Source of the DNA: Marsupella aquatica
Taxonomy: Eukaryota; Plantae; Marchantiophyta
DNA: 64,000 nt
Direction: 5' to 3'
Assembly: GCA_973895155.1 (NCBI GenBank)
Contig: OZ316899.1
Location: 2,069,573-2,133,572, forward strand
Shown one piece after another: positions 13,863-27,647 of the stretch. A model generated the notes under the pieces. It did no database searches. It had not been told where the DNA came from and saw only the letters and a list, made by a program, of their open reading frames with translations. Position numbers and translations under genes: made by a program. Position 1 is the stretch's first letter, and each line of letters begins with the position of its first letter.

Positions 13863-15291
13863 ACTTTAGGTGCACACTCACTTGTAGACTACTATCATCT
13901 GCCATCGTTTCCGTAAAACTAGCGCTCATGCACCATAAAGTATGAGTAGTGCAGAGTAGTGTACTTGTGCATTGATTTTAACTCTGAAGAGCTACTAACC
14001 AGGTTGGACAGGAGCAAACCCTAAGGTCCTTCCTACAATCATCCAATGATCATGAATATGATCGTACTGTCGGATACACTTGGCTGACCTAGTCAAACAA
14101 TATTCCTAGCATGTACCAATTCAACTTGCTGGAGTTGTAAAATGTCCACAATGCGACATAATTTTAGTCTGCCCATCAGTTATGAAACAATGCGGACAAC
14201 TTAAGTTTTGTCATGCTGAAGTGCAATTAAATGATAGGAGATATATACTTATAGAATGGGCTATGGAGAGGATGTTGGTCGCCTTGACGTGAGTACAGAA
14301 AGGCCGCTGATGACAACGCAAGAAAAACTACTTATGCTTCACCAAATCTCACGAATTCACAACTTTGTGAAAATGTTTATTTGCCCTGTAAACAACCAGA
14401 GAGGGGATTATTTTTTTACATCTCTATCTCTCACTGTCTTGCTCTCTTGATTGGAGGATTAGGGTCACTAGGACTAGGGTTAAGAATAGGAAAGCACTAG
14501 ATTCCACAAAGTCCGTAAGGATCAACTCTCCTCAATGGCAGATATTGTTGAAGGCCTGATGGAAAGAAACTACTGTATCAACAACGGTGCAAGGTCATCT
14601 AGACCAACAGTCAAGAGCGGTTTACAATTGCGTGCATTCTCCATATTACCAATCTCTCTCTCTCCCTCTCTCTCTCTCTCTGTGGATACGTTGCGACAGT
14701 ATATATATAAATAAATAAGTAAGTATATGTATGACTAGTGATATGTAATCCCTAGAAATGCCATTGACATCCTTCTGACATGTGTAACACCCACCAATTA
14801 TAATACATTACACATTACACATATAATACCTATGTATGGTCTATAAACGGTAAATTATGTATTTTTTTCTCAACCACATGGAATGCATTACCACCTTACG
14901 ATCACCATCCTGAGATAGGGTAGCCCAGCAATACTTAGCGCCAGCCCTACTGGCGGCAACCCTAACTTACCCCCTCCTCTATGGCCTACCTTCCAACTAA
15001 AACCTCTGCCCCAACTCGAACAATCAGTCGTGCATACATTTTTTCAACTACACATTGCCAATCTCCACAGGCTGTCTCACGACAACAGCGCAATCCAGTT
15101 TACACATTATTCAGAAGATTGAAGCAGCTACACTAGTGCAAACTGACAATCTGCACAGGCTGCCCACTACTGCATCGCCACAATTTCCATCATGGCTCGT
15201 GCAGGACAGGTATGTGCAACCAAACCTCATTTTTTATCATTTTTATGAATGATTAAATGTTTTTTCCATAGACAATACCAGCTAGCCTAAT

Positions 15292-15425
15292 GTTGGTTCA
15301 TGTCTCCCCGTTACCGCCGTGGCTTCTGGTAGCAGAAACATGGAAACAGGGATTGAATGAAATTGATTTTTGATCCCGCCCCAGGGACGGGGGCTAAAAG
15401 ACGACCCTGGGGTCTGTGATGCAGA
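15292..15425 (+). ncRNA. Putative structured RNA motif, variant A (candidate ribozyme)
   Basis: Predicted pairings: CATGT/ACATG, TCCCCGT/ACGGGGG, TACC..GGTA and CCCCAGGG/CCCTGGGG. These covary against the other copies. Confidence 0.55.
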
Positions 15426-16140
15426 CTACGTCTCCTGCATTCCAACATTAGTTGATAGTCCACTTCACACAGCATGACTAGCTATGTTGATGCACTGCAT
15501 AGACGTCCTGGCTGCAACCGGGAGAACACTCTTTTCTAGCGATACTAATCTCTCTATGTATGTTCGTTACTAACCACTATGTCTCAATGTGAATGTTTTC
15601 ATTTGAGTGCCGACACTCAAATAATGTACTGTATGCCCCGATAATGCGCCTACGACTGCTCCAACCACTTACACTGCAATCGCTTCTACCTTCTAAATAG
15701 CCCCATAGATACTCACCGCATGTCAATAGAAACGTTCTGTTGCAACTTCAAAACACAGAATGAACTACGACAGCACATATACATTTAATACCTAGCTATT
15801 TATTACAAGGATTGTTACTCTTACTTTTCGCAGTTACGACATAAGCCTGCTTGACTAATGACTGCACCGCTACCTAGATTGTATGATCGTCGTTTTTAAT
15901 GACCATACTGATCCCTGAGTGTATAACTAAGACTTTGATATGTCTGTGTTCGCAATTCATGACTAACTCAAGATAAGTGTCGATCGATGGCTTAACTAGA
16001 TCAGGTGAATGACTTGGTATGTGAGTATTTAAAGAGGCACAACTCGTTACCATACTCGACGCTGTATAGACTCTGCCTATGCCTGCTATGACTTAGTCCA
16101 GACTTGACAATGGCCTTGAATGGGTGTTCTTCTTATGAAA

Positions 16141-17540
16141 TTATCTCTCTTTGGACAAAAGAAAATCGAATTACCCATTTTAAATCAGTATTATAGAAAT
16201 ACCTCAAAACCAATGTATGGACATGTTTATACATATAAAATATAAGTATGTTTTGACTTACACTTACATTTATGCACATAAATAAATATACTAATTCTCT
16301 GACACATGCACCACCATTCGATCTTAACGCTAAGAGATGTTAGTACATCTACCACTCAAATAAAATACCCTAGATCTGACGGTCACCATAGGGTTTTGGA
16401 CCCCACAAAGAAAACCTAAAATATCTCAGGACCTACGCAACCTTCTTTAAAAGCGCACTGTTCACTCTCTACAATTATTCTCTTGGCACAACACTCTGGT
16501 ATCCTGCACTGACCCACTTTTTGACTGCATATCATTTCCAATGTTCTGTTCACACACTGCACTACGTGGGCCAGGACATTCTCCTGCCATGTACTCTGTG
16601 CCCTATGCTCTGCCCCAATAGATGCTTGTGATATAGTTTTTCTAAGTACATCATACTCAAGGTGACCTAGTCAATCAACGAGACCTCTTACACAACTCCA
16701 GTACATGAAAAATGGCTCGGGCGCAACAAGTATGACCTTGTTCTCTTCTATGCTGTATGATTTCTTTTATATGTCTTGTGCTAGCCTTGAACTGATTACA
16801 CGTCTCCCCGTTACCGCCTGGGCTTTGGTAGCAGAAACGTGTAGCTTGAATCTGTCCTAAGTTTGACTGGATTCTCCCCATGGATGGGGGCTCAAAGACG
16901 ACCATGGGGCCTGCAATGTAGCCCGTGTCATCTACATTTTCAGTTCAGGATGATGGTCTACATCAATCTGTATGACAGACAGATATGATGAACCGCTACC
17001 TTCTGGCTTGATCTGATCAAGATAAGTCTTTATTGTAAAGGAAAGATATATTCTTTCTTCAATGTTTGTCTCAATACTAACCTATGCTAATCTCTTTCTG
17101 GTGCTGTCATCCACAATGCAGAGTTACCTCTATGCTAATACTTGTGACGTACCTTTTTCTCCTGATTTTTTTTAACTTTGATTAAATATTTCTCAATGAC
17201 GCATGAATACACACATCTCATACTGCTCTATTTTGTTACAACACATATCATGATGTCACTACTTTATCTTTTCATATTACTTACTTGGAATATAACTCCT
17301 TTTCGTATGACCCATTTGTTTACTGCGTATCAAACTTCTATCTGTCCTCGCATGACATACCATGTGCATTCGGTAACTTGTGAATTTCTGACATGAATGA
17401 TCTGGTGGATATCATATCCCATAAAGATACTCCCTCTACCAATCTGTGTGACTAAACCATATGCTCTGTGTGGATATGGTCTCGTCTTGACGGTGGCCTT
17501 GACTGGGTGTGTATAAACTACTCTTTATGATCTCTCTCTT
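16141..17540 (+). repeat. ~1.4-kb direct repeat, copy 1 (pLTR-like)
   Basis: Near-identical to about 22961-24366 (TGGACAAAAGAAAAT...GTGTATAAACTACTCTTTATGAT). Confidence 0.9.
16793..16922 (+). ncRNA. Putative structured RNA motif, variant B
   Basis: Predicted pairings: TACACGT/ACGTGTA, TCCCCGT/ATGGGGG, TACC..GGTA and CCCCATGG/CCATGGGG. Confidence 0.55.
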
Positions 17541-17690
17541 ACTTTCCTCCACTCCTTCAATTGGTTTTGAAGGACCATTGTCAAGATCGATACTAATGCC
17601 ACACACCCATGGATGTCTGATTACAGAAACGCTGGTCATGGGAAATGCTATCTTTAGGATACGATAATGACCTCCCACGGCCATGTAACA

Positions 17691-19141
17691 TGGCTATCCA
17701 AGCCACCCTGGCCTCCATTCGCCAACCAGAAATTCACACGGCCATCCAGACACATGATCGGGATGTGATGAATCGTGGAGACGATGATGCACCAGGTCAG
17801 TTACTCCTACACGTCCTGGGGATTAATGAATGGTTTACCATATATCAATCTGCCGGATGTATCAGCACGGAGAATGCTCTGACCAAACTTGATAGTCTTA
17901 TTAGTTTGCTGGATACTTTTGAACACATCGACGAAGACGAACTGGAGCAATCGCGCGTTACCAGCAGCAAGCTAGCACGGATGTTAGCCTACGCACCAAC
18001 GGTTTCTACTACCAATGAATGTCCCCCTTCAGCACTTATTATCGATGTTCCTTTGAGACTTTGGGAGAATCCGTTGTTAAACACTTCATGGTTGTCCACT
18101 GAGGAACGTATTGCTTTCAATGAGGCCATTGATGGAGCGCAATCATCACAGAAGGACCTAGATGATTCCAAACAAGATGGAGAACCTTTCATTCCCAATA
18201 ATCCGCCACGCTTTCTAGAATGGGAAGCTTCAAAAGTTGACTGCTGCATGTGGCATATTCCTAACATCAACAATCTTGCTCCTATTTCTCTCGGGATGTG
18301 GAAAGCGTGGGCGTCCCTCTCTACCGAAGATATTAAGGCATGCAAAGCAAATGCCATCCGAGGCTTCTCATGGATCGAAACCTCACCACCAATCTCGACT
18401 CGCTGGCCCATGACGATCTTTGGTGCTCCTAAATACAAATGCTCTATGGCGGCTGGGGCTAAGATCCGTGGTAACTTTGTTACCAATACTTCTAGGTCTC
18501 CCCAGGAACACAAAACCAAGCTCTGGAACTGGCACAGACCATTCCTTTGCTGCTCCTGTAATTCGGCATCAAAAGGAGGTTGCATTGGCCAAATTCTTTG
18601 GTTCGACCACGCTGTCTGGTACATGGCCAACCATCTTGAGCTTGTCTTTGAAGCATTGTCAACACAAGCACGTCTCATCCTCATGATGAGCTTCTTAGGG
18701 GGTGAAGCACGTCGGGTGGTGCTGGACCAGGTCGCTTTCTTTTTTGTTAGACAGCTCCTTCTTGAAGCTACCAACGAACAACTATGGGACCCCTCTGCAC
18801 AACTACTTGCTGGTCATGGGGAAGCGAAGGGGGCACGCATCATCGAGACACTCGTTAAACCTGGCAAATTCTCCGAACAAACTTCAACGCCTAAACGAAA
18901 ATGGAACCTTAATACAGCTTCACCCAATGCTGAGTCCGCTACACGCAGAGGAATCTATGCAAACCAAACCCCCCAACGTGGCCGTGGACGGGGCAATTAT
19001 GCATGGAGACCTAGTACCCCGCAATCTGCACCAGGTGCGCGTCACCAATTTCAGGGCAACAAAACCCCCACGTTGGCCCCAAAGTCTTCTATCGGGCAAT
19101 CACCGCTACCACGTCGCAACATGCACTTCAATGATGAATGA
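17691..19141 (+). CDS. Uncharacterised ORF1 of the Penelope-like element (~483 aa from the first ATG)
   Basis: Uninterrupted long ORF directly upstream of the RT, with a basic Arg/Gly-rich C-terminus (TPQRGRGRGNYAW). No domain recognised. Confidence 0.6.
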
Positions 19142-19654
19142 GCGCTAGCCTACAATAAATACGCAACTTCCATGTTTTGTGTGCTCGATTCTATAATAGA
19201 TGTACCTGATAAAAACTCGTGACTACCTATCGATCGATAGTTTGTACTGATACCATAATGAAACAATGTTACGAACTTATTATATACTCTAGTTAAAATC
19301 TAATGCAATATCAACTGACTTGTCACCGCTCATTGACTTTTGTATTGATGCTATTGACATAATCGTAATCAATGTTCGACGCATTCCCTATTTTCCTATT
19401 TTTTGCTGCTTTGCTATATGAACTAACTAACGCGTACACTATCAGACAAACGGCGCCTGCTCCAACTCCCACATGGTCGGCACACAATCACTCGTAACAA
19501 GGATCGATCGGCAGTACATTTTGTGCACCTGCTATACACCAGCCGTGCCTTTGAATGGTTACCGCTACGACAAATCTTTATAACCTGCCTCACGTAGTGT
19601 AATCTATGTGATCATATACCTACGCTTGACTCTATTTGTTTCGGCTGGAGATAC

Positions 19655-21624
19655 ATGGATGCAGTTTTGACTCTATGTTATCACCCTCCTGAAGTTTTTT
19701 GCAATTTCAACATTGATTCTCTCGTAGCTGAATCTTGCGCCTGCGCCTGCCAATCCAATAGATTCAAACCCTTCCTTGATCCTCTCACTTCTAAAGAATT
19801 CCATGTAAATGACAGTCTGGCTTCTAGCCATGTTAGAACTACTAACTTAGATCTCATCAATGACAAATTCCTATGCACCATACTATCCTACGGCCTTAAC
19901 CATATAATACCCCAACCCACAAAATTCCAGACGGCGCTCCCCGAAATTTTACGTGCTTGGCTCGATATTGGTTCGTATCTTGGCTTAGCAGAATCCAACA
20001 TCAACGATGGGACAATCAGGCTCCCTGACATTTGCTATCAGTTTTGGCAAACCAGAGCACATCGCAACATTGGACATCACCGAAGGCACCAAAACGGAAG
20101 CTTATCAGCAACGGCGACATCCAAATTACAATTCCTACTGGAGCACTTTTACTTCTCAAGACTAGATAAAGCGCTAACAATGTCTGCATATTATGCATCC
20201 AGCACATTCGAGAACAAGCACTACATCGACTCCAAGGAGATGACTTCACACCTGACAACCACACTCTGGAGGAAGTCACATATACATGCCAAGAACATCT
20301 TGAACTGCTGATCCCATAGATCACTTTCCGGTATGCTGGTCTACCTTTCATTATGGCCTCATACAAATTACATAAGCATAAATATCGATGGATCACTAAT
20401 GCCTCTCGATGTATATTCTATGGACCCACCAGCATCATTACACAGATCCTAAATTGTCTATTGATAGAGCTTAAGGCATGGGCATTTAGGCAGACAGAGT
20501 TCTTACGCAAGTTCTTTCACATCAAGACCTCATTCTTTTGGGTTATCGATTCATTATACAAATTCACTTTAAACCTCCCAACAGATATACACAGCTTCTT
20601 TGTGGCTGACATTACTAGATGTTACGAGACAATCCCACTTTGTGGCGATGATAACCTACCATCCGCCTTGGCGCATGTTGCCAAAATTGCGTTCTAACAT
20701 CCCAACGCTACTCTTCGTCAACCGGAGCAACTGTGGGTTCTAATTAACATGACTTCTGGTCTCGCCACTGAAGCTCGGTGGGGGCGGCGGCCACCTCGAT
20801 CTTCCTGCTGGATTGAGTTTACATTACCGCAATTTATTCAGTTACAATCATGGCTAATAGCTAATTGCTTTATCAGACTCGGGGATCAGGTATGGCGCCA
20901 GGCTACTGGCATACCGATGGGTTTTTCTTGCTCACCACAGTGGTGTAATTTGTACTTCATTTCATATGAATTTTGATTCATGCAACGAGTGGCTAAACTA
21001 AAATGCTACCACCTTCTACCACTCTTTGAAGCGACTTACAGATATATCGACGACTTCTGCATCCTCAACAACCCGGAGATACTTTGATTCTTGGATCCAG
21101 CAGAACCCCGCACTGACAGCAACCCATATTGGATCTATGCTTTGCAGGTGGTCAGTCTACAACCTGAGATTGACGCTCATGTCCAGGATAACCCTACCTT
21201 GGGTATTGCTGGACACTTCCTTAATGTCCACATCAATATACTAGACCAACAGCATGGACTGTATGAAACTACCAGGTTTGACAAACGACAACTTCTCCCC
21301 TTCCCTTTTCAACAATACATACAATTACGTTCCAATAGGCCAGTACAACAATCCTACAACATTGCCATTTCGCAAGTAGTACCGATACTTTACATGACTA
21401 GTTCTGCACTACTTGCACATGCTGAGTTGCACATCCTAGTTCAAACGTTAGTTAATAATGGATTCCATGAAGCTCGCCTAGATAGACTCATTCTTAAATT
21501 CTGTACTACACACATATTCCCCGACATTAGATTTCCTATCAATGATCTGTGTAAACTGATTAATGAACTAAGTCTGCATCGATCATTCTTCCGTGTCCAT
21601 AAGAGAAGATGGGAATCAGTTTGA
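19655..21624 (+). pseudogene. Penelope-like (Naiad/Chlamys-type) reverse transcriptase, with stops and frameshifts
   Basis: Motifs include CAC..F.D...HV.T.NL.LI, GLNH, F..LDKA, YKLHK..YRWI, VADITRCYETIP, WRQATGIPMGFSCSP, YRYIDDF, GHFLNV and TTRFDKR..PF...Y...SNRP...SY.I.ISQV. No GIY-YIG domain recognised. Confidence 0.8.
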
Positions 21625-21725
21625 GCAGAGCTTTGGTGAGTATGGTATGCACTCCCCATCTGGGGTGAGTGCATACCACACTCATCCCGGATGGAAGTGC
21701 CTCTACCATGGGTATATGGTGGAGG

Positions 21726-21727
<2 letters not shown>

Positions 21728-21783
<56 letters not shown>
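21728..21783. repeat. (CT)n microsatellite
   Basis: About 28 CT units. Other tracts at 14653-14681 and 22950-22980. Confidence 0.95.
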
Positions 21784-21785
<2 letters not shown>

Positions 21786-22381
21786 AGAGGAACATGGAAG
21801 ACTAATGATGACAACCCTCGGAAACTAAATGGGATGTGGATATAAGTCTGGACTTTGTCATATGAGAGGGCATGACCCCCATAACACTTCAATCCTAATA
21901 CATCAATATTGGTTTACATAAACCTGGGCTATCGGAGTAGACCCAACAAACCTAGGCGCCCACGTTTGGCCCTGGAAAATACCCTAAAAATGCCGCCAAA
22001 GCAACGGCACTGCCATTTCTTGAGTCGGTTGTTTGTGCCCAGTGGCTCCTGAATTACATTCTAAGCCATACGAAAACACCACACACTGAGGTCTGTGACG
22101 TTGCATTATACACTGTAGCAAGCTCGTGCCAGCTCTGGCAAGGATCAGCTTCAACCTGCTGCAGCTCGTAAGGACAACCTGTTCACAGATCGTGAAGGAG
22201 GAAAGGTGTCGACTGTGCAGGATTCAGTAGAATCCAATGGGTGATAAAAATAAACAGGTACAATGTGTGACTATGTATGGGAAAATGTTCATATCTAATG
22301 CTTTTTGAAATACGAAATTGCTCATACTGTCATCGCTCCAATAAAATAGATGCTTAGGATGAAGTGACTAATCTATCCCTA

Positions 22382-22497
22382 GCCCATGTCTCCCCGTAGC
22401 CGTCCGGACAATGCTACAGAAATATGGGACATGAGATTTTGTTTTTACCACATTATTTCTACCCTATGACGGGGGCTGAATGAAGGCGCAGGGGATG
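22382..22497 (+). ncRNA. Putative structured RNA motif, variant C
   Basis: Predicted pairings: CCCATGT/ATATGGG, TCCCCGT/ACGGGGG, TAGC..GCTA with inner GTCC/GGAC, and CCCTATG/CGCAGGG (partly decayed). Confidence 0.5.
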
Positions 22498-22947
22498 TGG
22501 ATCACTTCAGTCAAGTGATCCCTAGGGACAGAGTATGGCCCATGCTCAATGTCTCTGACTAGACATTGGAGTAAGCCGTCACTCATCGAAAAATCGCATG
22601 TGTAAATGGGTACACTGGATTTAATTCTAATGATAATGAGAAGCTACGAATGATCCAGTGATTTACGGGTATGGTGAATGTAGATGGTTATGATATCTCT
22701 GAGTGATGATTCTATGGTTTAACATCTACCAGTGTACATTTATTAAATTGAACAGCGATCGGCATATAAGAAATTATGAGTATACTATTACCATCTATAT
22801 GATATGTGTATGGATATGAGTATAAGTATGGGCGATGCACGCAACTGAAGAATAAATTGTGGATTTCGGAATGCTATGTCGTCAGTAACAATCGGTCCTG
22901 AGTTATATCAGGGTGTGATACTATGTGTATGGACACAAGTTTCTATC

Positions 22948-22960
<13 letters not shown>

Positions 22961-22982
<22 letters not shown>

Positions 22983-24366
22983 ACAAAAGAAAATTGAATT
23001 ACCCATTTTAAATCAGTATTATAGAAATACCTCAAAACCAATGTACGGACATGTTTATACATATAAAATATAAGTATGTTTTGACTTACACTTACATTTA
23101 TGCACATAAATAAATATACTAATTCTATGATACATGCACCACCATTCGATCTTAACGCTAAGAGATGTTAGTACATCTACCACTCAAATAAAATACCCTA
23201 GATCTGACGGTCACCATAGGGTTTTGGACCCCACAAAGAAAACCTAAAATATCTCAGGACATACGCAACCTTCTTTAAAAGCACTGTTCACTCTCTACAA
23301 TTATTCTCTTGGCACAACACTCTGGTATCCTGCACTGACGCACTTTCTGACTGCATATCATTTCCAATGTTCTGTTCACACACTGCACTACGTGGGCCAG
23401 GACATTCTCCTGCCATGTACTCTGTGCCCTATGCTCTGCCCCAATAGATGCTTGTGATATAGTTTTTCTAAGTACATCATACTCAAGGTGACCTAGTCAA
23501 TCAACGAGACCTCTTACACAACTCCAGTACACGAAAAATGGCCCGGGCACAACAGGTATGACCTTGTTCTCTTCTATGCTATATGATTTCTTTTATATGT
23601 CTTGTGCTAGCCTTGAACTGATTACGCGTCTCCCCGTTACCGCCTGGGCTTTGGTAGCAGAAACGTGTAGCTTGAATCTGTCCTAAGTTTGACTGGATTC
23701 TCCCCATGGATGGGGGCTCAAAGACGACCATGGGGCCTGCAATGTAGCCCGTGTCATCTACATTTTCAGTTCAGGATGATGGTCTACATCAATCTGTATG
23801 ACAGACAGATATGATGAACCGCTACCTTCTGGCTTGATCTGATCAAGACAAGTCTTTATTGTAAAGGAAAGATATATTCTTTCTTCAATGTTTGTCTCAA
23901 TACTAACCTATGCTAATCTCTTTCTGGTGCTGTCATCCACAATGCAGAGTTACCTCTATGCTAATACTTGTGACGTACCTTTTTCTCCTGATTTTTTTAA
24001 CTTTGATTAAATATTTCTCAATGACGCATGAATACACACATCTCATACTGCTCTATTTTGTTACAACACATATCATGATGTCACTACTTTATCTTTTCAT
24101 ATTACTTACTTGGGATATAACTCCTTTTCATATGACCCATTTGTTTACTGCGTATCAAACTTCTATCTGTCCTCCCATGACATACCATGTGCATTCGGTA
24201 ACTTGTGAATTTCTGACATGAATGATCTGGTGGATATCATATCCAATAAAGATACTCCCTCTACCAATCTGTGTGACTAAACCATATGCTCTGTGTGGAT
24301 ATGGTCTCGTCTTGACGGTGGCCTTGACTGGGTGTGTATAAACTACTCTTTATGATTTCTCTCTCT
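22961..24366 (+). repeat. ~1.4-kb direct repeat, copy 2 (pLTR-like)
   Basis: Near-identical to 16141-17540. Confidence 0.9.
23620..23748 (+). ncRNA. Putative structured RNA motif, duplicate of variant B
   Basis: Lies within the 1.4-kb direct repeat and has the same helices as the 16793 copy. Confidence 0.5.
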
Positions 24367-24380
24367 GGACCCAAACATTC

Positions 24381-26177
24381 AGTGGTGGACCTAACCACCC
24401 AGCCCCCTCACCAATCCCAACACTCATGCCTAAGTGCCCCTGGTGCCCGAACGCCTCCACAGAATACCTCGAGCAAGCCCCCTAGTGCCCCTTTGCACCG
24501 CCAGCTACCCCTCGCATACAAAGCCGCACTTGCTCTCCAACACGACCGCTACTCAACGGTCCTCACTGTCTGCACAAGCAACCAAGCACCTCGGTAAGTA
24601 ACCTTTCAGGATCAAGAACTTGCCGAGTCTAGTATCCTAACTCAAGCTCAACAGAAATTGGTAAATAGGTCAGCAATAGGTCCTCCCGATGCCATAAGCC
24701 GGAACCAGAACCCACGCCCACTGTTCGTCTAGAACAACTCCTTCCTTGAGCGCGGCCCGGGTTCCCCCTCGTACCTATCCATCACCAATTCACGGCCCTG
24801 ACCCTAGAACATGCTCATGGCCCAATTAGCGTAGCTTGTTCTAAAGCTTGTCCCAAGCTTGTCCCAACACGCCAGGACCAGAAAGGCCCGGCTCTAGCAA
24901 CCAACTCCCGATTTTCCTCACTGATGGTCTAGGGGCCGAACACTCTTGGAACTCAACCTCCACACCTACTTGGCCTTGCCTCCCCAACGCAAGCTCCCTT
25001 GGGAGATTGAACGCGGCTTGGCTACTGTTTGGCAGGATTTGGCAAGCGGGCAAGTTAACACCCACAAACCCCGACAACCCATGGTGCCCCCAAACCCAAC
25101 TGATCTCAAGAGGGCGTAGCCCTTCTCGAAAGCTTTCTAACGCACCCAAGAAGTCCTCCAACAGACTTCCCGTTGTCGCGTGGACTAAATGCAAGGGTCA
25201 CCTTGGGAAAACAAATTGTTTCTGGTTGCAATCCAGACAAGTGATAGACACGATTCGGGGCCCAAACTCAAACACTTTATTTTCTGAAAATCTTGTGATC
25301 AATACAATGGGTGCCCTTGGGCGGGTCACTCGTGAAAGTCTGATCTCTAACCCTTTGGCGGACTACTATCCATCTTCCATCGAGTTATCGTCCTCTCAAA
25401 GGCTATCAAGTTGAAAAATCCACAAAATCCAATTCCTCAAGTGCTCAAGTTCAGAACTTGGAATCTCTTAGCTCGCATCGCCAACGATCCAACACTCAAG
25501 CTCGCTGGTCTACAATCGGTAGCACTGCAAACCTCAATCCAAATCTCCATAAACGATCGACTCCCCTGGACTGAGCCAAAGCCCAGGCCTCAAATACACC
25601 TCAAAAGCAGCATCCCCGCCCAATGAGTCACCGCCAGGCGGGTTCAGAACTCAAAAGCCAGACTCTTGGTCGCCCGAAGACAAACCAATAGCCCTTCGCA
25701 TTCCAATCACAGCCAACTCCCAACTCCTTAGCTTCCGCATGCCCAAAGCTCATCAGAAATGAAACACCAATCGTCACTCAGAGTTGAGCTCAAAGTCAAA
25801 ACGATTTGACTCCTCAGCACTTGCAGCTCACTGAATACGGAACACCAATCGAGTCTCAGAGTCGAGCTTGAAGTTGAAACAATTCAACTCCAAAGCATTC
25901 GCAGCTCACCAAATACAGAACACCAACCGACTTCCTCATCCTTGGTCTTGGTACCAAAACGGTTCGTCACGACATTGTTGGGAAGATATCGTCGCTTCCA
26001 TTTGGCGGTTTCCCTTAGTGTCGCGACCGCCGCGGCTCACGACTTTGGCTCACCCTTAGCCCCCAGGGAGACACCACTCCCCTCATATATGCTTCTGAAG
26101 ACCTGCCACCCCCAAACCAACTTTGGTCCCTAAACATTTGGCCCCCAACCCAGATCCTATCCTATGTAATGGGCGCG
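24381..26177 (-). mobile_element. Family-A LTR, left pieces (24381-25173 and 25975-26177); remainder at 48673-49153
   Basis: Colinear with intact LTRs once the two insertions are removed. Confidence 0.85.
25174..25974. mobile_element. Solo LTR of a third family (~800 bp)
   Basis: TGTCGCG...CACGACA termini. Inserted in the family-A LTR at GACTTCCCGT|TGGGAAG. The TSD is degenerate (CCGT/TTGT). Confidence 0.7.
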
Positions 26178-27647
26178 AGTGGTGGACCTTGCCACCCAAC
26201 GCCCTCACCAATCCCAACACCCACGCCTAAGTGCTCCTGGTGCCCAAACGCCTCCACAGAATACCTCGAGCAAGCACCCTAGTGCCCCTTGCACCGCCAA
26301 CGGCTCCTCCCATATGAAGCCGCACTTGCTCACCTACACGACCGCTACTCAATGGTCCTCATTGTTTGCACAAGAAACCAAGCACCTCGGTAAGTAACCC
26401 CTCGGGATCTAGAACTTGCCAAGTCTAGCAACCTAACTCAAGCTCAACGGACGTTGGTAAATAGGTCAGGGATAGGTCCTCCCGATGCCATAAGCCGGAA
26501 CCAAAACCCATGCCCACTGTCCGTCCAGGACAGTTCCTTCCTTGGGCGCGGCCCGGGCTCCCCCTAGTACCTATCCATCACCAACTGACCGCCCTGACCC
26601 CAGAACATGCTCATGGCCCAAGTAGCGTAGCTTGTCCCAACACGCCGGGACCAGAACGGCCCCGACTCTAGCAACCAACTCCAGGTTTTCCCCACTGATG
26701 GTCTAGGGGCCGAGCACCCTTGGAACTCAGTTTCCACACCTACTTGGCCTTGCCTCCCCAACGCAAGCTCCCTTGGGAGACTGAACGCGGCTTGGCTGCT
26801 GTTTGGCAGGATTTGGCAAGCGGGCGAGATAACACCCTCAAACCACAAGAATCCACGGTGCCCCCAGACTCAGCTGAGCTCAGGAGGGCGTACCCTTCCT
26901 CAAGAGTTTTCCAACGCACCCAAGAAGTCCCCCAACGGACTTCCCGTTAGGAAGTTATCGCCATTTCCGTTTGGCGGTTTCCCTTAGTGTCGCGACCACC
27001 GCGGCTCACGACTTCGGCTCGTCCTTAGCCCCCAGGGAGACACCACTTCCCTCATATATGCTTCTGGAGACCTCTCACCCCCAGACCATCTTTGGTCCCT
27101 AAACATTTGGCCCCAAACCCGGATCCTATCGTGCATAATGGGCGCGCCACCAACTGGCAACGCCCATAACTTTCTCGTTAGGCATTCGCAAGCGGAGTGC
27201 CTTAGCCCGTTGTGATCGGGCCAACCCAGTGCTCATGCCTATGCCCTCAGGTCTCATCGCTGCTTGGGGCCGCCAAACAGCCCAACCCGGATCGGGCCAT
27301 AACTTGCGCCCCAAACGTCCGTTGCCCATGGCGTCAACTCCATTGGCCTTGGGCCCAAAAGGAGCTCACACTCAAGCCCTTAGAACTCAAAGTCCATCCA
27401 GAGGTCCGCATGGCCATCCTTGAGCCCGGCCCATTTCCCCTTGACCCGACCAGCTATCAGCTAGTCCAAGTCCTTGGTGTGTCCCCAGCTTGGCTCCTTG
27501 CCTCGCTAGTGCCACGTCTCATTGTCCACAAGTCTCCCCATGCTAAGTCCTCCCCGGATGGCCTATCCGGGCCTGGACCATAAGGGAGCTCGGTGTCGGA
27601 GTCAGCAATGCTGGAGCTAAGTGTTAAGGTAGTCGAGTTCCCCGACT

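Follow-up and report, generated by a model that had tools for sequence, protein, structure and literature searches.

A covarying RNA motif with hammerhead core blocks in S-G-C order in the non-coding repeats of liverwort retroelements

Can a hammerhead-type ribozyme whose strands are arranged in an order that no circular permutation produces be encoded in the genome of a known organism? The question is raised by a stretch of 64,000 nucleotides of the liverwort Marsupella aquatica (GenBank assembly GCA_973895155.1, contig OZ316899.1, positions 2,069,573 to 2,133,572 of the forward strand; this whole stretch is called the window below, and coordinates are counted from its first letter), in which an apparently Penelope-like retroelement carries four copies of a structured RNA motif in its non-coding repeats. 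From a comparison of 23 copies, the motif is read here, with moderate confidence, as a hammerhead-type self-cleaving ribozyme with its core blocks in the non-circular order S-G-C, that is, cleavage site, GAAA, CUGA..GA.

All four window copies lie on the + strand, where a covariance model matches each of them. Copy A (15293..15417; 95.8 bits) has its GUC at 15302-15304, one stem I strand at 15305-15311, GAAA at 15335-15338, and the stem I partner at 15387-15393, followed by a core block at 15394-15401 that reads CUAAAAGA. In copy B (16793..16914; 98.5 bits), the corresponding parts are GUC at 16802-16804, GAAA at 16834-16837, the stem I partner at 16884-16890, and a core block at 16891-16898 reading CUCAAAGA. 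Copy C (22379..22499; 83.3 bits), the sole window copy with all 12 of 12 hammerhead core nucleotides, has GUC at 22388-22390, a palindromic loop GUCCGGAC at 22402-22409, GAAA at 22419-22422, the stem I partner at 22469-22475, and the core block CUGAAUGA at 22476-22483. Copy B' (23619..23740; GUC at 23628-23630) is ~98% identical to copy B, and an A-to-G change in its helix 1 converts an A-U pair to G-U. The string GUCUCCCCGU occurs exactly four times on the + strand of the window, at 15302, 16802, 22388, and 23628, each time with A(Y)GGGGGCUNAANGA ~85 nucleotides 3'. Four more GTCTCCCCAT sites (8032, 27532, 48552, and 49060) were rejected as motif copies; they belong to an unrelated repeat family in which GTCTCCCCAT is followed by GCTAAGTCCTCCCCGGATGGCCTATCCGGGCC. 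The initial annotation of this locus had placed four copies at these positions, ~600-660 nucleotides after a (CT)n tract, which agrees with the measured distances of the GUC from the tract (621, 661, 605, and 648 nucleotides for copies A, B, C, and B', respectively), and every compensatory change that it had listed is present in the sequence.

The motif is ~120 nucleotides long, and the family assembled here comprises the four window copies, 17 copies from Calypogeia fissa, and two from metagenome contigs. Relatives were gathered by a sequence-only pattern scan of metagenome contigs, in which two of the 26 matches (L002 and L005) were true relatives and the other 24 were due to chance, and then from five C. 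fissa loci with the covariance model. In L002 and L005, every helix is made of other letters with the pairing kept. All 23 copies lie on the coding strand, and in each C. fissa locus one of the copies stands ~0.9-1.4 kb 5' of the element's open reading frame 1 (ORF1). A covariance model search did not find the motif in related elements of Riccia sorocarpa (L028), in a dozen more distant relatives of the reverse transcriptase (RT; L035-L046), or in two short ENA contigs (L029 and L030), which may end before the motif position; no hammerhead was found in any of these sequences either. Contigs from public sequencing runs of this organism and a relative, up to 185 kb in length, look like DNA; they give the copy number and variants of the family and showed no molecule ends. 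Over 15247-15445, their depth rises 2-5 fold, 7-17 distinct contigs being present there, so that nothing else in this multi-copy family is as conserved or as often repeated as the motif. Over 14650-20600, most differences between the window and the run contigs are transitions (in run X3, 38 C>T, 34 T>C, 32 G>A, and 24 A>G), and the window copies therefore look decayed.

The fold is established by covariation in an alignment of 21 sequences from three sources, for which column shuffles and partners slid by 1-3 columns served as controls. Paired cells amounted to 89.5%, as compared with 69.7% in the shuffles and 38-44% for slid partners, the covariation score was 0.57 against at most 0.10 for slid partners, and two-sided changes with pairing kept were counted in 150 cells versus 46 in the shuffles and 19-32 for slid partners, which bears out the initial description of a covarying pseudoknotted RNA motif. 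Five helices covary strongly. Helix 1, which would be stem III of a hammerhead, has double changes in five of its seven pairs and is 96.6% paired; helix 5 has them in all eight pairs and is 94.6% paired; and the hairpin has them in all four. The pseudoknot, which would be stem I, is 100% paired, and its sixth pair alone covaries (A-U in 13 sequences, G-C in 6, and G-U in 2). RNAalifold, given no structure beforehand, recovers helix 1, the hairpin, and helix 5, together with a covarying variable hairpin between helices 1 and 5. In 21 of the 23 copies, stem I has a U-G wobble at its base, which points to the + strand RNA as the functional strand. It has to be kept in mind that relatives were at first sought with a requirement for pairing in the inner five nucleotides of stems I and III, which introduces a partial selection for these pairs; L002 and L005 came from sequence matching only, and none of the search criteria involved helix 5, the outer pairs of stem III, or either of the hairpins (the variable one included). 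The sequences are also related to each other, which makes the shuffle counts overstate significance, a weakness from which the slid-partner control is free. No further long-range helix and no extended stem II emerged when all columns were scanned against each other for covariation. Two other pairings were considered and rejected: that of the hairpin strand with the segment after the core block, on inspection by eye, and that of nucleotide 1.6 of stem I with the C before AGAAA, which would be A-C in 13 copies, the 1.6-2.6 pair covarying instead.

The columns of the arms are contiguous in the alignment (19|20, 40|41, 97|98, and 115|116), with stem I, the hairpin, the remnant of stem II, and helix 5 abutting without a spare nucleotide, and this implies a gapless four-way junction that would tie together the distal ends of stems I and II. 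In the proposed architecture, helix 1 would act as stem III and the invariant UCCCC(R)U / A(Y)GGGGG pseudoknot as stem I, the catalytic core would be built from GUC, GAAA, and CUGA(A)NGA, and stem II would be reduced to three positions centred on a single conserved G-C pair, with the palindromic-loop hairpin and helix 5 as the other arms of the junction. Cleavage would be expected 3' of the C of GUC, i.e. after 15304, 16804, 22390, and 23630 in copies A, B, C, and B'.

What carries the catalytic reading is the identity of the letters that do not change. C17, U16.1-A15.1, G12, A13, A14, C3, A6, G8, and A9 are invariant or nearly so over the 23 copies, U4 is present in 21 and G5 in 20, and 17 copies have the full set of 12 hammerhead core nucleotides; the presence of hammerhead core pieces, first noticed in the window, is thereby confirmed. 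Each core nucleotide adjoins the correct covarying helix, an arrangement for which the chance odds are ~1e-5 or lower by our own rough estimate. Self-cleavage is considered the best reading because the invariant single-stranded letters are the catalytic ones, each beside the correct covarying helix. The position of G5 is A or C in copies A and B, and copies A, B, and B' are mutated there; G stands at both 15396 and 16893 in other genomic copies of these subfamilies (in the latter case, in most related contigs). The variable third core letter, which the initial annotation had taken as a feature of the motif and written as CUNAANGA, is thus due to decayed window copies, and the family reads CUGAANGA.

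The order of the strands, which had been recognized from the window as none of the three circular permutations of the hammerhead, is not new, since it is that of the type-SGC hammerhead published by Eckert, Friedrich, Weinberg and Weinberg (NAR 2023; PMC10085705) and validated by them in vitro. In their scheme, block S consists of stem III, the cleavage site, and stem I, block G of stem II, GAAA, and stem III, and block C of stem I, CUGANGA, and stem II (PMC10085705). Their rows read III-GUC-I, a 3-nucleotide linker, II-GAAA-III, an optional hairpin, an enclosing strand, I-CUGAUGA-U-II, and a second enclosing strand, and the authors report none of these RNAs in the genomes of known organisms (PMC10085705). 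The liverwort motif resembles the type-SGC RNA HRIMA-1 in its block order, in forming stem I as a pseudoknot, and in the invariance of the inner five base pairs of that stem. As in type-SGC RNAs, helix 5 encloses the stem I partner and the CUGA..GA block and joins the far ends of stems I and II, the variable hairpin takes the place of the optional hairpin between stem III and the enclosing helix, and a nucleotide is added after A9. The two differ in that type-SGC RNAs have a 5-bp Watson-Crick stem II, whereas the stem II of the motif amounts to about one G-C pair; in that the linker from stem I to stem II is ~3 nucleotides long in type-SGC RNAs, while the motif has a hairpin of 20-30 nucleotides with a palindromic loop there; and in the core, which is CUGAUGA in the former and CUGA-NN-GA in the latter. 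Moreover, type-SGC RNAs come from environmental RNA and the motif from the nuclear DNA of liverwort retroelements. The signature strings of the motif are absent from the supplementary alignments of PMC10085705, and a literature search returned no later paper on type-SGC hammerheads and none on hammerheads in liverwort retroelements. The suggestion of a new topology has therefore to be withdrawn: the topology was already known, and what is new is the host and the architecture. The view that there is no canonical hammerhead at this locus stands, as Rfam 15 gave no family at its gathering score for the window and 10-15 related loci, and no ribozyme family at E <= 10.

The hairpin that takes the place of the short linker has a loop of 6-8 nucleotides that is self-complementary in 21 of the 23 copies, with at least nine distinct palindromes, among them CCCGGG, CCUAGG, UCCGGA, GCAUGC, GCUUAAGC, GUCUAGAC, and the GUCCGGAC of copy C. 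In the window, the loops lie at 15316-15323, 16816-16823, 22402-22409, and 23642-23649 of the + strand (copies A, B, C, and B', respectively); contigs related to copy A read C at 15320, which makes that palindrome perfect. Each palindrome is weak evidence alone, and Fisher's method over the nine types, which are not fully independent, gives ~4e-5. The central letters stay self-complementary, which is not required in a hairpin with so short a loop, and this suggests that the loop pairs between two RNA molecules. Hammerheads of Penelope-like elements (PLEs) are likewise thought to act as dimers (PMC4209133). Directly 3' of the motif stands a second conserved block (16915..17010 on the + strand, behind copy B) consisting of a covarying hairpin, WWGGUCNAUG, a hairpin with a CUGAY loop, and UACYGCC. 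It is seen again at 15418-15520 and 22500-22600, in the 17 C. fissa copies, and in L002 and L005, the loop of its first hairpin often containing RUC; RNAalifold run on a MAFFT alignment of this block gave no consensus structure.

It has to be noted that a number of observations weigh against self-cleavage. CUGA-NN-GA is found in all 23 copies in place of CUGANGA, with two nucleotides between A6 and G8 (CUGA-A-N-GA); an extra A stands between the conserved C of the G-C pair and G12, so that GAAA does not sit directly on stem II; and no Watson-Crick stem II is evident, three nucleotides being left on each side (core block to helix 5, and hairpin to GAAA), as already surmised from the window. The middle opposition of these three (the second nucleotide after the core block with the second before GAAA) is C-G in 20 copies and U-A, U-G, and C-A in one each; the outer one is A-U, G-U, G-A, or A-G, with no A-A as against 4.2 expected; and the inner one is a C-A opposition. 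We know of no validated hammerhead that combines an extra core nucleotide with a vestigial stem II, and both appear to be real departures from every validated hammerhead. The recently duplicated copies B and B' both carry C at the G5 position, and an intact core was therefore not needed for their duplication. Related elements in Riccia do without the motif, and a catalytically dead hammerhead of a Penelope element did not impair insertion in vitro (PMC11167929).

Several of these points also speak for a different explanation, which must be regarded as a possible if less probable one, namely that the motif is a structured, non-catalytic RNA domain descended from a hammerhead and now serving RT recognition, dimerization or packaging through a palindromic kissing loop, or the control of splicing. 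The extra core nucleotide, the vestigial stem II, the duplication of B and B' with a changed G5, and the independence of Penelope-like insertion in vitro from hammerhead activity all fit such a domain, as do the second conserved block 3' of the motif and a loop that covaries to stay palindromic, since dimerization needs no catalysis. However, a pure binding or dimerization role leaves unexplained why it is the catalytic nucleotides, C17, G5, G8, G12, A13, and A14 among them, that make up the invariant single-stranded positions while the helices drift, and it is on this point that the reading as a self-cleaving hammerhead is preferred.

Two further explanations are much less probable. The motif might be a ribozyme of another class, either a nested double pseudoknot like that of the hepatitis delta virus (HDV), cut 5' of helix 1, or a new core that merely resembles a hammerhead, which is considered very unlikely. 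Retrotransposons do use HDV-like ribozymes; those of non-LTR (non-long terminal repeat) retrotransposons such as R2 and L1Tc likewise form a nested double pseudoknot in the 5' part of the element transcript, and the helix order 1a-Xa-Ha-Hb-1b-hairpin-Xb of the motif nests in the same way as P1-P2-P3-P3'-P1'-P4-P2'. However, HDV-like ribozymes have other conserved nucleotides and junction lengths: a conserved strand of six nucleotides separates the hairpin from helix 1 in the motif, as compared with none or one in HDV-like ribozymes, there is no conserved C in the strand leading to the P2 partner, and what would be J4/2 is paired as helix 5. HDV, twister, pistol, hatchet, and hairpin families of Rfam gave no match at E <= 10, and it is the letters of the hammerhead that are conserved in the motif. 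Readings as a hairpin ribozyme, an HDV-like ribozyme, or a twister, compared through their consensus features, were rejected on junction lengths and on the identity of the conserved letters. The remaining idea, hardly credible on the present alignment, is that conservation here has nothing to do with RNA function and reflects a promoter element or protein-binding site in the DNA, or recent copying. A DNA-level signal would be in keeping with the internal promoters of PLEs, which overlap the 5' intron (PMC8557442), but it is contradicted by the covariation, with its 150 compensated cells against 46 in shuffles and 19-32 for slid partners, and by the strand-specific wobble pairs. Recent copying does not agree with the origin of the copies, which come from at least two liverwort-type genomes and from metagenome contigs and have flanks that can hardly be aligned.

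The element in which the motif resides is organized in a manner typical of pseudo-long terminal repeats (pLTRs). Units A, B, C, and B' are non-coding, 1.2-1.45 kb long, and have a CT tract at each end (14654-14681, 17532-17539, 21728-21783, 22951-22980, and 24359-24366), all on the + strand. Unit B (16144..17539), the pLTR immediately 5' of the coding body, ends 3' in the (CT)4 at 17532-17539, and its second copy 3' of the body, unit B' (22981..24358), is followed by (CT)4 at 24359-24366; unit B and 22972-24364 share 98.4% identity. Unit A (14682..16130) is a solo pLTR-like unit between CT tracts, in which a short ATG exon followed by GTATGT (15192-15215) precedes motif A, and unit C (21784..22950), which bears motif C, is a solo pLTR-like unit within the (CT)n tail. 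Units A, B, and C are strongly diverged, and a full alignment of the units shows no well-conserved block other than the motif. Between units B and C lies the coding body, with ORF1, an RT with the YIDD motif, two strong hairpins, and (CT)28. The layout pLTR, body, (CT)n, pLTR is seen again in the C. fissa locus L033, where 6598-9903 matches 15637-18907 at 97.6% identity as repeats of 3.3 kb. Solo repeat units are found within the CT tails of other elements as well, and the C. fissa loci likewise keep a short (CT)4-5 tract ~100-150 nucleotides 5' of ORF1. The solo units may have arisen by priming at CT tracts, either internal ones or those of the tails.

ORF1 (17627..19141, +) has no Pfam match; its homologues are found in the liverworts C. 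fissa (39-52% identity) and R. sorocarpa, and a look-up of the window ORF1 in assemblies gave no match. The RT (19655..21624, +) has three in-frame stops (TAA, TGA, and TGA), matches RVT_1 of Pfam weakly, and is 41% identical to the intact RT of 690 amino acids on the ENA contig L029. Its nearest protein-atlas clusters combine HTH_animal, DUF8422, and GIY-YIG, which is the PLE domain set (scores 0.94-0.97). The window RT has no endonuclease domain, and no match to a GIY-YIG endonuclease was found in ORF1 or RT of the window or of L029, which fits the endonuclease-less types of PLE, in which this domain is optional. A Penelope-like, endonuclease-less, (CT)n-associated retroelement is thus a supported label for the element rather than a proven one.

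The start of the coding body also suggests where in a transcript the motif would lie. An ATG with five codons (16712-16729) joins in frame to ORF1 across 16729|17627, with TTACAG as acceptor, and we infer a 5' intron of 897 nucleotides at 16730..17626 on the + strand, from GTATGA to TTACAG, which spans the junction between pLTR and body and contains motif B. The joined product aligns with protein P0004 of C. fissa from residue 59 and with P0013 of Riccia from residue 24, and the gene models of both place an intron at the same point. In C. fissa locus L032, the motif lies inside that annotated intron, and 5' of the motif in the window copies and in L002 and L005 there is an ATG that is followed by four to seven codons and then by a GTAWGW donor. 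Motif B begins 63 nucleotides 3' of the putative 5' splice site, and in general the motif would lie ~60-200 nucleotides into the intron, inside which the junction of repeat and body is marked by (CT)4. Because the 897-nucleotide intron crosses that junction, unit B and the coding body would form one element. The 5' introns of Penelope and Chlamys-3 likewise span the junction of pLTR and body (PMC8557442).

An intronic position would mean that splicing removes the motif, and self-cleavage would then act on unspliced RNA. In arrays of units, cleavage is predicted to release RNAs of ~1.2-1.5 kb running from ribozyme to ribozyme; the successive predicted cut sites are 1.5 kb apart for copies A and B and 1.24 kb for copies C and B'. 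In its most extended form, the model holds that the motif is an active permuted hammerhead, the first in a cellular genome, which dimerizes through a kissing loop and works as a switch between splicing and cleavage, the spliced transcripts losing it to become mRNA and the unspliced RNAs being cut and perhaps circularized, in the manner of retrozyme RNAs, to serve as templates for transposition; taken as a whole, this scenario is put forward tentatively and is thought unlikely.

The proposed model has parallels, as well as differences, in other systems of mobile elements. PLEs normally carry hammerheads in their pLTRs; those described by Cervera and de la Pena (2014) often have an extra nucleotide after A9 and carry palindromic elements for dimer formation (PMC4209133), and the liverwort motif shares with them its place in a pLTR near a probable spliceosomal intron, the nucleotide inserted after A9, and the palindrome (PMC4209133; Lunse et al. 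2017). They are, however, of the type I circular permutation, their stem II being normal and their stem III minimal, in which the motif differs, and their palindrome is in loop 3, whereas that of the motif is in the hairpin between stem I and GAAA; the PLE hammerheads of another plant, Selaginella, are canonical, while the liverwort motif is not. Retrozymes, known as LTR retrozymes in plants and non-LTR retrozymes in animals (PMC4918200, PMC7229834, bioRxiv 10.64898/2026.07.22.740005), are likewise non-coding, ribozyme-bearing head-to-tail units that derive from, or are mobilized by, autonomous retroelements, to which units A, C, and B', as solo pLTR-like units of 1.2-1.45 kb with 1.24-1.5 kb between successive predicted cut sites, offer a parallel. 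In contrast to the liverwort units, which are heterogeneous rather than one tandem monomer, the hammerheads of retrozymes are canonical ones of type I or III, and retrozyme RNAs have been seen in circular form.

The coding body ends in two hairpins and the (CT)28 tail (21635..21783, +; fold z-score -6.8), the hairpin sequence being kept in C. fissa and Riccia. A long near-perfect hairpin and a short second one directly 5' of the (CT)n tail are seen at window 21635-21727, L033:15503-15601, L027:15540-15638, and L028:14184-14282, with z-scores from -4.9 to -6.8, and their sequence is common to the Marsupella window, Calypogeia, and Riccia, the last of which does without the motif. These 3' hairpins are likely a recognition or priming structure for the RT. 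Further 3', beyond unit B', the region 24381-27146 consists of internal direct repeats of 88-92% identity (24381-25174 with 26178-26948, and 25977-26177 with 26946-27146), which show no similarity to the body of ORF1 and RT.

A non-circular ribozyme permutation has so far been shown once, in RNA of unknown environmental agents, and the motif described here would, judged from its sequence, be the first S-G-C hammerhead-like motif in the genome of a known organism. Many PLEs appear to lack hammerheads (PMC8557442); a motif of the present kind would escape descriptor searches that presuppose a circular permutation and exact core spacing, which bears on that apparent lack. Closure by a four-way junction, a nearly absent stem II, and a palindromic loop would constitute testable design variations on a very well-studied ribozyme, and the retroelements of liverworts would provide the S-G-C topology with a host, with an origin in DNA, and with a biological setting that is tractable.

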